Part shown: one piece after another, positions 9,901 through 64,000 of the stretch
Numbering within the stretch: the first letter of the stretch is position 1
Layout of the letters: each line of letters opens with the position of its first letter
Assembly: GCA_051530055.1 (NCBI GenBank)
Contig: CM121341.1
Span: 5,310,784 to 5,374,783 of the forward strand
Direction of reading: 5' to 3'
DNA: 64,000 nt
Origin: Neoechinorhynchus agilis
Taxonomy: Eukaryota; Animalia; Acanthocephala
The notes under the pieces: model-generated
What the model saw: the letters and a program-made list of their open reading frames with translations, nothing else
Databases searched by the model: none
Told to the model about the DNA's origin: nothing
Position numbers and translations under genes: made by a program

Positions 9901-11760
9901 CATAATTGCTCGATTGATCATATGGGCTAATAAAAGTGCTTTTGGTCTTAAACAGAAATTCCGAACTTCAATATGATTGAGAAATGCGTGTAGAAGAAAA
10001 GCCATTCCCGTCATTCTAAAACGTTCAAGATTAGCACGATCGGTGTTATGGTAGACCAAGTTAAAATCCGGCATATCGGGTACTTTAAACGTATTCCTAA
10101 CTCGTTTACCAACATAAGCAAGAGCTTGTTTGTGAGTGAATACTTTAAGGGCATGGCATCGTAGAAGAGAGAAACTCATTTTCAATTCCATTCGTCTCCT
10201 TTCATCACCGTTACAACCAATACCGCCCACCAATAGCATTATGTCTCGATCAGCAATTATCCCTAGAGCTCTCATCATCACACATACCGGGATATCTTCT
10301 CGAAGACTACTGTGCCGAACTAAATATCCTTCTTCAATCTGGTCAGTGCTAACAAAAAGCCGCATTTTTGTTATAGCCTTCGAAGCTGAACTGATTATAG
10401 AACACGTTATTGTATTTTTATCATCGTCTTTCTCAACCAAAAGACGATTGCTTATTTGCTGCTCTTGGATCAATACGACTCGTTCGGTTCCACGAACTAT
10501 AAAGTATCCACCGGGGTCCAGAGGACATTCTTGTACTGAGAGAATTTTGGTTGATTCGAGAATAGGGAAAAGTTAGTCTATCTTCGACTGATTTCTCAAA
10601 CTCTTGTTTTCTTTTTCGATTGCCTTTATTTGCAAAAACACTTTTTCAGCTCAAGTGTTTTAGTCGCCGACGAGTGTGAAAGAGAATCGCTATTTTATCA
10701 AATAAAGACAATCAGAAAAAAACAACAATAACGCCGGGGTCCAGAGGACATTTCCTGATACTGAGAGAATTTTGGTTGATTCGAGAATCGGGAAAAGTTA
10801 GTCTATCTTCGACTGATTTCTCAAACTCTTGTTTTCTTTTTCGATTGCCTTTATTTGCAAAAAGGCTTTTTCAGGTTAATTGTTTTAGTCGCCGACGAGT
10901 GTGAAAGAGAATCGCTATTTTATCAAATAAAGACAATCAGAAAACAATGAGAATCCGCTTTTAAGAAAACTAAATTCTACTCTGTAAATTCATCAAAAGA
11001 AAGTTTATAGATATTTGAGGTCGTCCAGTCGATGCAACCTTTAGATTAAATGTCACATATCATTGTCCTCGGGGTGAATTTGATTGTACGTTGGCGAATC
11101 CTGTCCCCGGTGTTATCGTTACTTATTTATTTTCGAGATATTTCACAAGGTTTTCCTTGCCTCTTCAGTCGCCATTGTTTGTAAGTTTTTAAATAGACAC
11201 GAACTCGAATATTTAAAAACTTACAAGCCATAGCGACTGAAGAGGCAAGGAAAACCTTTTGGAGATATTTCTCAACGCCAATGTACAACTAAGATTCAAC
11301 CGAAACTCGATCATAAGGCAATAATCTCTTCCTCACTCCTTCCCCTTAAAGTACATCTACAGCTTCGTAACATGATCGGGATTTCTCCAATACAATAGTC
11401 TTTTCGGAACAATCGCTCCTTTTTTCTCACATACTCAATATCCGCTAGGACTTTTGCAGAATATGTCATATCGCGAAGTCTACACTCATGAGGGCCAATC
11501 GGTCGAGTCGATCCATCCGGATTGATAACACTTGGAAACGACACTCGGACGTCCCGATAACGAAGGTATATCTTTGGTAGAGCTTCGGATCGTACTGTAC
11601 TATTCGCCATGACAATCCGTTTTAGTCCATGTTCAATAAAATGGTCAAATGATCGAATGTGTTGACGAAGAAGACCTCGGCATTTGACTAACTGTTCGAA
11701 CAGATCGCCGCGATCCGTCAGTGTCTTCAATGCGCCTTCTCCGGATCTTTCCGGCGTCAT
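6934..11760 (-). CDS. POLR3B: RNA polymerase III second-largest subunit RPC2; exons approx 11760-11314, 10533-8413, 8359-8291, 7827-6934
   Basis: Hallmarks [92 protein letters not shown]. Exon boundaries are inferred from alignment and are non-canonical (see findings). Confidence 0.93.
8054..8128 (+). ncRNA. Putative non-circularly permuted hammerhead ribozyme, copy 1 (inside a POLR3B intron, antisense)
   Basis: GGGGCC-GAAA-TACCTC...CTCA-CTGATGA-GTCCT...GAGGTA-TC-TGAG: complete core, stems I and III perfect, one mismatch in stem II. Confidence 0.7.
10510..10945. repeat. Tandem duplication (~224-bp period) of the 3' end of POLR3B intron 1 plus the first ~25 nt of exon 2
   Basis: CCGGGGTCCAGAGGACATT...GACAATCAGAAAA at ~10510 and ~10734; the second copy has indels in the exon part. 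Confidence 0.9.
11147..11258. repeat. Near-perfect ~50-bp-arm palindrome inside POLR3B intron 1
   Basis: AAGGTTTTCCTTGCCTCTTCAGTCGC..TTGTAAGTTTTTAAATA pairs with TATTTAAAAACTTACAA..GCGACTGAAGAGGCAAGGAAAACCTT. Confidence 0.9.
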
Positions 11761-31827: not shown

Positions 31828-32142
31828 CTCTGAAAATATACATAATTCCTTTTTTAGATTTAAATGACACTCATGATAAAACATTCGAGTTCACTATAAA
31901 AGTCGATCCATCATTGGCTTAAAAGATTTAATTGTTTTAAAACGCATTTAGAACCAAACCTTAAAACGTCCATTCATCAGGCCGAAAACTCCAGCTTAAA
32001 TTGTAGAAAACTTACAAACAATCGCTGAAGAAGATCCGAGATAGTGGATCGAAATATCAAATAAAATCTTAATTTCATTTATCTCTCTCCTATCAACAAA
32101 TAACAATGAATTATCTTTTCAACATGAGAATAAAACGTGGCG

Positions 32143-56590: not shown

Positions 56591-57176
56591 ATGTAAAGTA
56601 ATTCAATTTACTGCTTTTTAAAATACTCTTTTTGAACCACGGTCGTAAGGTAAGAAAATAGCTAATTTCCGGGGGAAACAATAAACGCAATTTTTTTCCG
56701 GCGTAGAAATTAAAATAATTTTAAAATCCGATATTTCGGCACAATCTTGTACGTGTTTTGATCGGATTTCAAAAATAAAATCATTTTAATTTCTCTAAAC
56801 CAGAAAACAATCTATTTATGATCAATTCAATGTTCAAACAATAAAAGGAAAAAAATGCGCTCTCATCCGATCGAATCGATAATGTGAGTTCTGCTGATGA
56901 TAATCAGGTATTTTATTGCTGGGAAATATTTCACGAGGAAACTTCACCTCATCAGTCATTGCAAATTTAAATAATTGATTAGTTCTGTTCAAAATTAACC
57001 ATCCCGAAAGATTTTCTCCATATGTTCTTCCGTGTCGATTTTGCTCTGTCAATGATATAAAAACTTTACCTTCCCTATTGGATTTAAATTCGCTAATTTT
57101 TTTCCGACATTTCCTCAATGCCTGTTATTGTTTAGTTCGCTTGTCGACACCCGAGGGAGATTTCTTAAAGATAAAA

Positions 57177-60100
57177 TCCTACGCTAAGGCCGAAAATTCA
57201 CAATAAAATCGAATTTCTTAGTTCTTATTTTCTTCACCGTTCCAAAAAGACATAGGATTTGTGACTGATACATTTTAGATAGTCTGAAGAAGGCCTACGC
57301 TAAGGCCGAAAATTCACAATAAAATCGAATTTCTCAGTTCTTATTTTCTTCACCGTTCCAAAAAAAGATTTGGACTATCATTTAGATAGTCTATTTTCTT
57401 CACCGTTCCAAAACAAAACGAAGAGGCCTCCGAAAATTCACAATAAAATCGAATTTCTAGTTCTTATTTTCTTCACCGTTCCAAAAGGACATAGGATTTG
57501 TGACTGATACATTTTAGATAGTCTGAAGAAGGCCTACGCTAAGGCCGAAAATTCACAATAAAATCGAATTTCTCAGTTCTTATTTTCTTCACCGTTCCAA
57601 AAGGACATAGGATTTGTGACTGATACATTTTAGATAGTCTGAAGAAGGCCTACGCTAGCCGAAAATTCACAATAAAATCGAATTTCTCAGTTCTTATTTT
57701 CTTCACCGTTCCAAAAAACATGGATTTGCGACTGATACATTTTAGATAGTCTGAAGAAGGCCTACGCTAAGGCCGAAAATTCACAATAAAATCGAATTTC
57801 TCAGTTCTTATTTTCTCACCGTTCCAAAAACATTGGATTTGCGACTGATACACTTTAGATAGTCTGAAGAAGGCCTACGCTAAGGCCGAAAATTCACAAT
57901 AAAATCGAATTTCTCAGTTCTTATTTTCTTCACCGTTCCAAAAGGACATAGGATTTGCGACTGATACATTTTAGATAGTCTGAAGAAGGCCTACGCTAAG
58001 GCCGAAAATTCACAATAAAATCGAATTTCTCAGTTCTTATTTTCTTCACCGTTCCAAAAAAACATTGGATTTGCGACTGATACACTTTAGATAGTCTGAA
58101 GAAGGCCTACGCTAAGGCCGAAAATTCACAATAAAATCGAATTTCTCAGTTCTTATTTTCTTCACCGTTCCAAAAGGACATAGGATTTGCGACTGATACA
58201 TTTTAGATAGTCTGAAGAAGGCCTACGCTAAGGCCGAAAATTCACAATAAAATCGAATTTCTCAGTTCTTATTTTCTTCACCGTTCCAAAAGGACATAGG
58301 ATTTGCGACTGATACATTTTAGATAGTCTGAAGAAGGCCTACGCTAAGGCCGAAAATTCACAATAAAATCGAATTTCTCAGTTCTTATTTTCTTCACCGT
58401 TCCAAAAAAACATTGGATTTGCGACTGATACACTTTAGATAGTCTGAAGAAGGCCTACGCTAAGGCCGAAAATTCACAATAAAATCGAATTTCTCAGTTC
58501 TTATTTTCTTCACCGTTCCAAAAAAACATTGGATTTGCGACTGATACACTTTAGATAGTCTGAAGAAGGCCTACGCTAAGGCCGAAAATTCACAATAAAA
58601 TCGAATTTCTCAGTTCTTATTTTCTTCACCGTTCCAAAAGGACATTGGATTTGCGACTGATACATTTTAGATAGTCGAAGAAGGCCTACGCTAAGGCCGA
58701 AAATTCACAATAAAATCGAATTTCTCAGTTCTTATTTTCTTCACCGTTCCAAAAAGACATTGGATTTGCGACTGATACATTTTAGATAGTCTGAAGAAGG
58801 CCTACGCTAAGGCCGAAAATTCACAATAAAATCGAATTTCTCAGTTCTTATTTTCTTCACCGTTCCAAAAGGACATAGGATTTGTGACTGATACATTTTA
58901 GATAGTCTGAAGAAGGCCTACGCTAAGGCCGAAAATTCACAATAAAATCGAATTTCTCAGTTCTTATTTTCACCGTTCCAAAAAGACATGGGATTTGCGA
59001 CTGATACATTTTAGATAGTCTGAAGAAGGCCTACGCTAAGGCCGAAAATTCACAATAAAATCGAATTTCTAGTTCTTATTTTCTTCACCGTTCCAAAAAA
59101 CATAGGATTTGCGACTGATACATTTTAGATAGTCTGAAGAAGGCCTACGCTAAGGCCGAAAATTCACAATAAAATCGAATTTCTCAGTTCTTATTTTCTT
59201 CACCGTTCCAAAAAGACATGGGATTTGTGACTGATACATTTTAGATAGTCTGAAGAAGGCCTACGCTAAGGCCGAAAATTCACAATAAAATCGAATTTCT
59301 CAGTTCTTATTTTCTTCACCGTTCCAAAAGGACATAGGATTTGCGACTGATACATTTTAGATAGTCTGAAGAAGGCCTACGCTAAGGCCGAAAATTCACA
59401 ATAAAATCGAATTTCTCAGTTCTTATTTTCTTCACCGTTCCAAAAAGACATAGGATTTGCGACTGATACATTTTAGATAGTCTGAAGAAGGCCTACGCTA
59501 AGGCCGAAAATTCACAATAAAATCGAATTTCTCAGTTCTTATTTTCTTCACCGTTCCAAAAAGACATTGGATTTGCGACTGATACACTTTAGATAGTCTG
59601 AAGAAGGCCTACGCTAAGGCCGAAAATTCACAATAAAATCGAATTTCTCAGTTCTTATTTTCTTCACCGTTCCAAAAAGACATAGGATTTGTGACTGATA
59701 CATTTTAGATAGTCTGAAGAAGGCCTACGCTAAGGCCGAAAATTCACAATAAAATCGAATTTCTCAGTTCTTATTTTCTTCACCGTTCCAAAAAACATTG
59801 GATTTGCGACTGATACATTTTAGATAGTCTGAAGAAGGCCTACGCTAAGGCCGAAAATTCACAATAAAATCGAATTTCTCAGTTCTTATTTTCTTCACCG
59901 TTCCAAAAAACATTGGATTTGCGACTGATACATTTTAGATAGTCTGAAGAAGGCCTACGCTAAGGCCGAAAATTCACAATAAAATCGAATTTCTCAGTTC
60001 TTATTTTCTTCACCGTTCCAAAAACATGGATTTGACTGATACATTTTAGATAGTCTGAAGAAGGCCTACGCAGCCGAAAATTCACAATAAAATCGAATTT

Positions 60101-61397
60101 CTCAGTTCTTATTTTCTTCACCGTTCCAAAAAAACATTGGATTTGCGACTGATACATTTTAGATAGTCTGAAGAAGGCCTACGCTAAGGCCGAAAATTCA
60201 CAATAAAATCGAATTTCTCAGTTCTTATTTTCTTCACCGTTCCAAAAAAACATTGGATTTGCGACTGATACACTTTAGATAGTCTGAAGAAGGCCTACGC
60301 TAAGGCCGAAAATTCACAATAAAATCGAATTTCTCAGTTCTTATTTTCTTCACCGTTCCAAAAGGACATAGGATTTGTGACTGATACATTTTAGATAGTC
60401 TGAAGAAGGCCTACGCTAAGGCCGAAAATTCACAATAAAATCGAATTTCTCAGTTCTTATTTTCTTCACCGTTCCAAAAAAACATTGGATTTGCGACTGA
60501 TACACTTTAGATAGTCTGAAGAAGGCCTACGCTAAGGCCGAAAATTCACAATAAAATCGAATTTCTCAGTTCTTATTTTCTTCACCGTTCCAAAAGGACA
60601 TAGGATTTGCGACTGATACATTTTAGATAGTCTGAAGAAGGCCTACGCTAAGGCCGAAAATTCACAATAAAATCGAATTTCTCAGTTCTTATTTTCTTCA
60701 CCGTTCCAAAAAGACATTGGATTTGCGACTGATACATTTTAGATAGTCTGAAGAAGGCCTACGCTAAGGCCGAAAATTCACAATAAAATCGAATTTCTCA
60801 GTTCTTATTTTCTTCACCGTTCCAAAAAGACATGGGATTTGCGACTGATACATTTTAGATAGTCTGAAGAAGGCCTACGCTAAGGCCGAAAATTCACAAT
60901 AAAATCGAATTTCTCAGTTCTTATTTTCTTCACCGTTCCAAAAAGACATAGGATTTGTGACTGATACACTTTAGATAGTCTGAAGAAGGCCTACGCTAAG
61001 GCCGAAAATTCACAATAAAATCGAATTTCTCAGTTCTTATTTTCTTCACCGTTCCAAAAAAACATTGGATTTGCGACTGATACATTTTAGATAGTCTGAA
61101 GAAGGCCTACGCTAAGGCCGAAAATTCACAATAAAATCGAATTTCTCAGTTCTTATTTTCTTCACCGTTCCAAAAAAACATTGGATTTGTGACTGATACA
61201 TTTTAGATAGTCTGAAGAAGGCCTACGCTAAGGCCGAAAATTCACAATAAAATCGAATTTCTCAGTTCTTATTTTCTTCACCGTTCCAAAAAGAAATGCG
61301 ATTTATGACTGATACACTTTAGATAGTCTGAAGAAGGCCTACGCTAAGGCCGAAAATTCACAATAAAATCGAATTTCTCAGTTCTTATTTTCTTCAC
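57177..61397 (+). repeat. 116-bp satellite, ~36 copies, each with a minimal hammerhead-like core
   Basis: CTGAAGA recurs at 57864, 57980, 58096; unit contains GT-CTGAAGA-A-GGCCT-ACGCTA-AGGCC-GAA-AATT-C-AC. Confidence 0.95.
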
Positions 61398-61459
61398 CAT
61401 ATTTTATCAGCAATGTTAAATATATATTCGATTTCTTAAAGCGAAGAATGTGTATTTCG

Positions 61460-63658: not shown

Positions 63659-64000
63659 TTAATCGGTGTTCTTTGACTTTTCACTTGAAAGGTCGTTCTG
63701 ATTGGAACTAAGAAGTGTATTGTCCTCAGCGGCGTTTGAATCTTCGTTTACTTTTGTAACATCGACATTGCACAATGCAGTTTCGTGGTCAAGTTCACCA
63801 AAAGGTTTTAGTAGCGAATCCTCATTAATCATTTTGAAGTGCTTAACAAAGACCGTAAATCGTCTACATAGACTGGTTTTAGCTTCGAATTCATCGAATT
63901 GTTGTCGATGGCAATGAAAAGCATGAGCAAAGAACCTGTATAGTCTTCTACACGTTGAACAGAGTCGATTGATTGATTTTTCGCTCACATTCGTTCGATT
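63659..64000 (-). CDS. MOB4: MOB4 / phocein, C-terminal part (starts beyond the window)
   Basis: CRRLYRFFAHAFHCHRQQFDEFEAKTSLCRRFTVFV matches MOB4 [36 protein letters not shown]. Confidence 0.85.
   Translation of the reverse strand, partial: NRTNVSEKSINRLCSTCRRLYRFFAHAFHCHRQQFDEFEAKTSLCRRFTVFVKHFKMINEDSLLKPFGELDHETALCNVDVTKVNEDSNAAEDNTLLSSNQNDLSSEKSKNTD

Follow-up and report, generated by a model that had tools for sequence, protein, structure and literature searches.

Structure of the locus

In a 64-kb window of the genome of the acanthocephalan Neoechinorhynchus agilis (64,000 nucleotides of contig CM121341.1, positions 5,310,784 to 5,374,783 of the forward strand) we analysed a tandem array in which most units carry the motif of a minimal hammerhead ribozyme (min-HHR) of the type associated with Penelope-like elements (PLEs). 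The original prediction had described it as a satellite of about 36 copies of a 116-bp unit, and Tandem Repeats Finder indeed returned a single array with a period of 116 bp at window positions 57178-61398, comprising 36.5 copies with 93% matches. The units are arranged head to tail on the forward strand, and alignment of the units placed the start of the array inside a stem II loop and its end at ...TTCTTCACC. Cutting the sequence after each GAAAATTC gave 36 whole units. The order of the motif is a 14-nt stem I 5' strand, CUGAAGA, an extra A, GGCCU-ACGCUA-AGGCC, GAAA, AUU and C, followed by ACAAUAAAAU. The intact motif CUGAAGA-A-GGCCU/AGGCC-GAAA-AUU-C is letter-perfect in 32 of the 36 whole units, so that the predicted parse (CTGAAGA, extra A, 5-bp stem II, AATT, C) holds exactly in these, and there were 32 full-score matches to our covariance model R1 within the array. 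The damaged units are a rearranged one (57316-57439), two that have lost part of stem II (57555-57668 and 59976-60083) and one in which the U of CUGAAGA is missing (58592-58706).

A representative unit, taken from predicted cleavage site to predicted cleavage site, lies at 58128-58243 (forward strand, as are all parts of the unit) and has the haplotype of the parent PLE copy, L051. It contains a relic of an open reading frame (ORF), GTTCC...GACTGA (58167-58196), which represents the last 30 nt of the PLE ORF including the stop codon TGA, as aligned to the end of the ORF at L051:1941-3263. The stem I 5' strand (58198-58211, hammerhead positions 2.14 to 2.1) is followed by the core box C3-A9 (CUGAAGA) and the unpaired extra A before G10.1 (58212-58219), the extra base being A, C, U or G in other copies. 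Stem II (GGCCU/AGGCC, 5 bp, with the 6-nt loop ACGCUA) occupies 58220-58235; it was present in every predicted fold, 94.5% of its cells pair, and compensating changes were seen in four of its five pairs across families. The GAAA box, the AAUU strand of the loop-less palindromic helix III (58239-58242) and C17 together span 58236-58243, with the predicted cut between 58243 and 58244. The stem I 3' strand, ACAAUAAAAU, was placed at 58244-58253 by the motif parse, covariation and the fold.

The array is part of a 4.26-kb block (57171-61429) that is bounded by 12-bp target-site duplications, GATTTCTTAAAG, with the left copy at 57159-57170 and an identical right copy at 61430-61441; between random flank pairs of this repeat-rich window, a 12-nt match was obtained in 15 of 2000 trials. 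Seven nucleotides of filler (ATAAAAT, 57171-57177), which match part of the unit (ACAATAAAATCG), separate the left duplication from the first unit, and as this unit begins inside the stem II loop it is 5'-truncated. At the right end of the array, and only there, a single PLE tail of about 31 nt was found (61399-61429, forward strand; ATATTTTATCAG...ATATATTC), the same sequence that follows ...CACC/T in the PLE copies L051, L052 and L047.

Derivation from the 3' end of a Penelope-like element

Comparison with L051 (C1:16.20 Mb) accounted for the whole unit, which consists of the last 30 nt of the ORF for reverse transcriptase (RT) and GIY-YIG endonuclease (EN) with its stop codon, 14 nt, the hammerhead, and 39 nt of 3' untranslated region (UTR). 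L051 is a 5'-truncated copy with a 440-codon ORF at L051:1941-3263, in which Pfam identified RVT_1 at residues 19-146 (E 1.6e-8) and GIY-YIG at residues 331-413 (E 1.2e-5). The ORF ends 17 nt before the CUGA box, the hammerhead starting 14 nt after the stop codon, and downstream of the hammerhead there are 39 nt ending TTCTTCAC(C/T), after which the tail segment of about 31 nt begins. The junction between the units of the array, ...CACC followed by GTTCC..., is the exact point at which the body of the element meets this tail.

The single ORF of L051, with RT followed by a C-terminal GIY-YIG domain, has the domain order of the EN+ PLEs. Also the insertions resemble those of this group, the described signatures of which are 5' truncation, partial tandems, truncated copies in inverted orientation and duplication of the target site (PMC8557442), as well as a 30-40-bp tail on one side (PMC8557442; PMC11167929); 5' truncation, partial tandems, an adjacent inverted copy, a tail in this size range and a target-site duplication were all found here. 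The link to PLEs was supported independently by 12 loci that were picked solely by their GIY-YIG match, 10 of which have a hammerhead in the same orientation, in six cases at exactly 83 nt downstream of the domain. Pfam GIY-YIG gave at least 150 scored matches (327 candidates) in the 46-Mb genome. The N. agilis genome is very rich in PLEs, which are not discussed in the assembly paper.

Based on these data, the array is very probably PLE-derived and made up of genuine minimal hammerhead motifs, and we consider it likely that the block at 57171-61429 represents one PLE insertion that retains nothing of the element but its extreme 3' end, repeated about 36 times head to tail.

Hammerhead motif and covariation

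The frequency of the motif in the genome was determined with a strict pattern, consisting of the core, any extra base, the GGCC stem and GAAAAUUH, and with a reversed control. The strict pattern matched 259 sites in the 46.2-Mb genome versus none for the control. Additionally, a structural descriptor patterned after the one published for min-HHRs was used, in which the register with one extra base was tried first and stem I was not required. It gave 101 sites in 192 kb of sequence, versus none in the reversed control and none in 50 shuffles of the window, and all 101 matches fit one extra base (A, C, U or G) after A9. Besides the stem II of the array itself, the families found had GGCC/GGCC (with three loops and stem I sequences), GUCU/AGAC, GAUCC/GGAUC, GAUCCG/UGGAUC, GUCCA/UGGAC, GCAAGG/CCUUGU and GACGC/GCGUC. 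Helix III is AAUU or AUAU across the sister families and AAUU in the array.

Covariation was assessed in 15 family representatives taken from individually fetched loci. In this set 86.5% of the cells that should pair did so, compared to 60.9% in shuffles, and two-sided changes were observed in 10 of the 12 pairs of the whole structure and in nine of the ten pairs of helices I and II. The covariation score was 0.652 versus 0.162 in shuffles, with none of 500 reaching the observed value, and at most 0.156 in slid registers. The innermost pair of stem I (1.1-2.1) was AU, UA, CG or GC without any mispair, and the second pair was formed in 14 of the 15 representatives. G10.1-C11.1 was GC in 14 and GU in one, and the 15.2-16.2 pair, the pairing of which the descriptor required, was AU in ten and UA in five, with none unpaired. 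A genome-wide search with covariance model R1 did not extend this set, as the 150 best of about 38,700 candidates, which were the ones scored, were without exception near-identical to its seeds. The evidence for covariation thus comes from the fetched loci.

Covarying families within one genome, an extra base after A9, G10.1-C11.1 and a palindromic 15.2-16.2 pair are the hallmarks of the min-HHRs of PLEs (Cervera and de la Peña 2014, PMC4209133). The array motif has the CUGANGA and GAAA boxes in type-I order with an H17 cleavage site, an unpaired base after A9, the G10.1-C11.1 pair and a loop-less palindromic helix III; it belongs to a set of covarying families within one genome, and it is located in the terminal non-coding part of an element with RT and GIY-YIG. 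As all features of the class that could be tested were present, we assigned the motif to the PLE min-HHRs, and we take this motif class to be genuine. The original assignment to Penelope-type minimal hammerheads thus stands, as far as the sequence can tell, for the type-I order, the extra base, G10.1-C11.1, the loop-less helix III and the link to a PLE ORF. With no loop in helix III and a palindromic 15.2-16.2, helix III can be formed only between two copies of the motif.

Conservation, folding and predicted cleavage

Several observations weigh against our reading of the array, the first of which concern the motif itself. Stem I consists of 2 bp, an A.A mismatch, 2 bp, a 2-nt bulge and five A-U pairs. 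It had been predicted to be weak and bulged, and it is, even though its two innermost pairs covary between families. The T/C variant in its 5' strand, for which a lack of covariation had been pointed out, is also real: the C at 2.11 breaks one stem I pair and is left without compensation. The covariation in stem II and helix III is in part ascertained, because the descriptor required pairing there. Independent model support was not obtained either, as no hammerhead was found with Rfam in the whole window at the gathering threshold or in the array at E values up to 10. Such a result is expected for this motif, because the Rfam models demand a helix III hairpin, which it lacks.

Secondly, the hammerhead is no better kept within the array than its surroundings. 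Of all cells, minority letters accounted for 0.8% within the hammerhead and for 0.7% within the 29 nt of UTR outside the ribozyme (Fisher p = 0.83), compared to 6.5% in the 31-nt stretch from the start of the ORF-end relic to stem I. The statement that the core is nearly invariant is therefore true in itself, but the invariance is not specific to the core. We rejected within-array conservation as evidence of selection on the core; with hammerhead and UTR equally conserved, it is silent on selection for the ribozyme. The most variable sites of the array fall in the ORF relic and avoid the hammerhead and the UTR. The five polymorphic sites are combined in many ways among the units, and a higher-order repeat was not found, the mean differences between units being equal at lags 1 to 6.

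Thirdly, the predicted folding of the transcript is unfavourable. A nested double hammerhead of two units, with swapped stem I strands and a 4-bp AAUU/AAUU helix III, had a predicted energy of -21.2 kcal/mol with the rest left free, compared to -44.9 kcal/mol for the minimum free energy structure, although these nearest-neighbour energies ignore the core and tertiary contacts. The double hammerhead is disfavoured because of two competing hairpins, UUUAGA/UCUGAA, which buries the CUGA box, and AAAUUC/GAAUUU, which buries helix III and the cleavage site. Finally, a sister array at C2:6.617 Mb consists of 3.5 copies of a 109-bp unit that has lost half of stem II and has the same junction as the array in the window; tandem growth is therefore possible with ribozyme-dead units, without an intact hammerhead.

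The alternative hairpins are present in every unit (in the representative one at 58198-58217 and 58238-58260, as UUUAGA-UAG-UCUGAA and AAAUUC-(11 nt)-GAAUUU). Pairing of the UUUAGA/UCUGAA type is possible in two sister families as well. This shared pairing could reflect a conformational switch or common ancestry. A monomeric variant, in which the AAAUUC...GAAUUU hairpin would serve as a 5-bp helix III and the cut would fall after the next U, was considered and rejected, because no stem I can form beside the core.

Previously, PLE minimal hammerheads have been reported to cut poorly in vitro even as dimers (PMC4209133; PMC6765202), and the modelled disfavour of the active fold matches this. One PLE hammerhead that was tested with its own protein cut only in the presence of that protein, and the cut was dispensable for insertion in vitro (PMC11167929). 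We regard real cleavage of array transcripts in vivo as a nearly even question, with the balance slightly towards no cleavage.

Sister arrays and copies elsewhere in the genome

The junction of the array in the window recurs at other loci. At C1:4.363 Mb there are 6.3 units that are 100% identical to each other, with C as the extra base, and both here and in the 109-bp units at C2:6.617 Mb the junction is CACC or CGCC followed by GTTCC. The insertion at C1:4.363 Mb further includes a fragment of the ORF and an inverted copy with a 5' truncation, and a separate duplication of 10-13 bp flanks it. The identical junction CACC-GTTCC is thus found at three loci, two of which were examined and have different flanks, indicating that a tandem of 116-nt units itself was copied to new sites. 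A longer unit was found at C1:9.24 Mb, where each of 9.4 copies of 419 bp runs from the coding region of the EN domain through the end of the ORF and the hammerhead to the UTR and the tail. Copies in this genome thus grade from those with an ORF, by way of the 419-bp tandems, into the 116-bp tandems.

Arrays of about 415 bp were observed at L027-L035 (C1:1453404-1458525) and L062/L063 (C2:5204799-5213238), in which the hammerhead is followed 38 nt on by the N-terminal half of GIY-YIG. Their junction lies 5-6 nt past the predicted cleavage site (UUU^UCAAA, then UACUCC) compared to 39 nt in the 116-bp array. Opposite-strand pairs of hammerheads, head to head and 60-360 nt apart, were seen in L023, L041, L042 and L052, for example at C1:1143113-1143218, and resemble the inverted 5'-truncated PLE copies of the literature. 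The two members of the L052 pair have different single core mutations, CUGACAA and CUGGCGA.

Origin of the array

We lean towards the PLE reverse transcriptase as the source of the head-to-tail copies. The enzyme would start at an internal site, the boundary between body and tail, and on reaching the 5' end of a short template it would jump to another start site, which would yield head-to-tail copies; unequal crossing-over may later have enlarged the array. Such a course would be in line with the known habits of PLEs, which include partial tandems, inverted truncated copies and 30-40-bp tails (PMC8557442), and with the internal initiation of reverse transcription that is reflected in the PLE tail (PMC11167929). 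In a read-through transcript of the array, hammerheads would follow one another at intervals of 116 nt. Pairing of the AAUU strands of adjacent units, with an exchange of their stem I strands, could then produce double hammerheads, and these would cut after ...GAAAAUUC to give 116-nt monomers. By analogy with other PLE hammerheads, any such cutting would probably be slow and protein-assisted.

It is also conceivable, but in our opinion unlikely, that the array is an inert satellite, in which the PLE 3' end was duplicated once and then expanded at the DNA level only, by unequal crossing-over or replication slippage, with the hammerhead as dead cargo. The equal conservation of core and UTR, the amplification of the ribozyme-dead 109-bp units, the predicted strong disfavour of the active fold and the poor performance of published PLE minimal hammerheads in vitro (PMC4209133) would all fit such a satellite, and many shuffled combinations are seen among the few polymorphic sites, as expected from exchange between units. 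However, the 3' boundary of the unit coincides exactly with the PLE body/tail boundary and the tail is single, which would be rare under random DNA duplication. Expansion within the DNA also does not easily account for the occurrence of the junction at three loci with different duplications at the two examined (the 57171-61429 block and C1:4.363 Mb), from which it follows that at least a short tandem was retrotransposed. Moreover, the variation lies in the useless ORF relic and avoids the hammerhead and the UTR.

A further explanation, which we regard as improbable, is that the array originated as a mini-retrozyme: double-hammerhead cleavage would free a 116-nt monomer, a host RNA ligase would circularise it, and rolling-circle copying by the PLE RT would produce the 36-mer. 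There is one hammerhead per tandem unit, multimer insertions flanked by duplications are present at independent loci, and what is conserved in the unit is the hammerhead together with the UTR, which has the presumed start of reverse transcription; in addition, it has been suggested that non-LTR retrozymes (those without long terminal repeats, LTRs) derive from the terminal repeats of PLEs as non-autonomous elements (bioRxiv 10.64898/2026.07.22.740005; PMC7229834). On the other hand, the retrozymes described so far have canonical, efficient type-I hammerheads in 150-450-bp repeats and RNAs of 170-400 nt, whereas the unit is here 116 bp with a minimal motif. The junction between units lies away from the cleavage site, the growth of an array of dead units speaks against a need for ribozyme action, and the active fold comes out as disfavoured in the predictions. 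We would give little credence to the 116-nt unit being the smallest retrozyme-like element yet, that is, a self-cutting and circularising RNA made of a dimer-only hammerhead, the reverse-transcription start of its parent PLE and 30 nt of the parental ORF. If it were true, the unit would, together with the 419-bp array and the copies with a full ORF, capture the stepwise birth of non-LTR retrozymes from Penelope 3' ends.

A chance motif in an AT-rich satellite, to which the absent Rfam hammerhead and the weak stem I could be attributed, can practically be dismissed in view of the 259 genomic sites versus none in the control, the several families with compensating changes and the tight linkage to GIY-YIG ORFs.

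Comparison with known hammerhead repeats and elements

The closest relatives of the motif are the min-HHRs of PLEs (PMC4209133; Lünse, Weinberg and Breaker 2016 via PMC6765202). They share with the array the type-I box order, the lack of a helix III loop and a palindromic 15.1-16.1 that functions only in dimers. Also shared are the base between A9 and G10.1, the G10.1-C11.1 pair, the many covarying families per genome, and the presence of single, inverted-pair and tandem copies beside ORFs for RT and GIY-YIG. In contrast, stem II has 4-5 bp here and 7-8 bp in the Schistosoma families, and the motif recurs every 116 nt in a 36-mer, compared to once per element of about 3 kb. Tandem PLEs with minimal hammerheads have already been reported in axolotl (PMC7229834). 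No min-HHR is known to have been described in Acanthocephala, and the word 'transposable' is absent from the N. agilis genome paper (PMC12690905).

The arrangement of the array has parallels in the partial-tandem and inverted insertions of PLEs (Craig et al. 2021, PMC8557442; Frangieh et al. 2024, PMC11167929), with which it shares 5' truncation, head-to-tail copies, an inverted truncated neighbour (in L016 and L051), a tail of about 31 nt at one end and target-site duplications. It differs in that a piece of only 116 nt is present about 36 times, whereas the usual pseudo-LTR arrangement is much longer and has far fewer iterations.

With the non-LTR retrozymes (Cervera and de la Peña 2020, PMC7229834; Li, Clavereau and Pollet 2026 preprint) the array has in common short AT-rich tandems with one type-I hammerhead per unit and without LTR, primer-binding site or polypurine tract. 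The retrozymes form multimers from dimers to 62-mers, and descent from PLE terminal repeats and mobilisation by PLE enzymes have been proposed for them. However, they have a helix III hairpin, loop-loop contacts and efficient cutting, their repeats are 150-450 bp long, and their circular RNAs have been demonstrated, whereas the 116-bp array has a minimal motif and retains the ORF end in its unit. The published description requires a unit of 150-450 bp with a canonical, efficient hammerhead that makes loop 1-loop 2 contacts (PMC7229834), and because the array departs from it in both unit size and ribozyme type, it falls outside the non-LTR retrozymes as described.

The original prediction had also drawn a parallel to newt satellite 2, Sm-alpha of Schistosoma and pDo500 of cave crickets (RF00163). 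This holds insofar as these, too, are tandem genomic repeats with a type-I hammerhead, and their short helix III has been said to make dimers necessary or favoured (Forster et al. 1988, cited in PMC4209133). It is an analogy only, since the classical satellites are canonical, with a real helix III hairpin and an Rfam match, and the array motif has neither. Because there is no match to Rfam RF00163 and GAAA-AUU-C leaves no loop to close helix III by a hairpin, the motif is not a canonical type-I hammerhead.

Overall, the array is a sound but fairly ordinary example of a PLE minimal hammerhead; what is new is the host phylum, the very short unit and its base-by-base traceability to the ORF end. 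Acanthocephala are thereby added to the animals that have Penelope-type minimal hammerheads in their genome. The descent of hammerhead repeats from PLE termini has been proposed before (bioRxiv 10.64898/2026.07.22.740005), and an unusually clear hammerhead 'satellite' that can be traced nucleotide by nucleotide to where a retrotransposon ORF ends supports this recent proposal that the hammerhead repeats of animals (retrozymes) descend from PLEs. For annotation, such arrays should be treated as PLE-derived and not as anonymous satellites. Public N. agilis RNA-seq data make the in vivo cutting of a dimer-only hammerhead spaced at 116 nt directly testable.

Other features of the window

Three further hammerhead-like sites were observed in the window. 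A solitary minimal hammerhead at 32015-32069 (forward strand) has CUGAAGA-A, stem II GAUCCG/UGGAUC, helix III AUAU and C17, and its stem I is disrupted; its family is also present in L037 and L048. At 11123-11178 (reverse strand) there is a minimal hammerhead with an extra G, stem II GCAAGG/CCUUGU with G.U at 10.1-11.1, the loop AAAA and helix III AUAU, the family of which is also found in L039. A weak hammerhead-like site with CUGAUGA-G and a stem II of GUGA/UCGU, including two wobble pairs, is located at 56910-56965 (reverse strand), about 220 nt upstream of the array, and may be a decayed copy or due to chance.

The 64-kb window is exceptionally repeat-dense, with at least 12 unrelated tandem arrays between 3975 and 56612, having units of 71, 79, 80, 89, 113, 117, 135, 146, 246 and 329 bp, among others. 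Among the flanking ORFs the sole match was an exon-like ORF at 63659-63988 (reverse strand), 2.2 kb to the right of the array, which contains a Mob1/phocein domain (E 1.4e-9).

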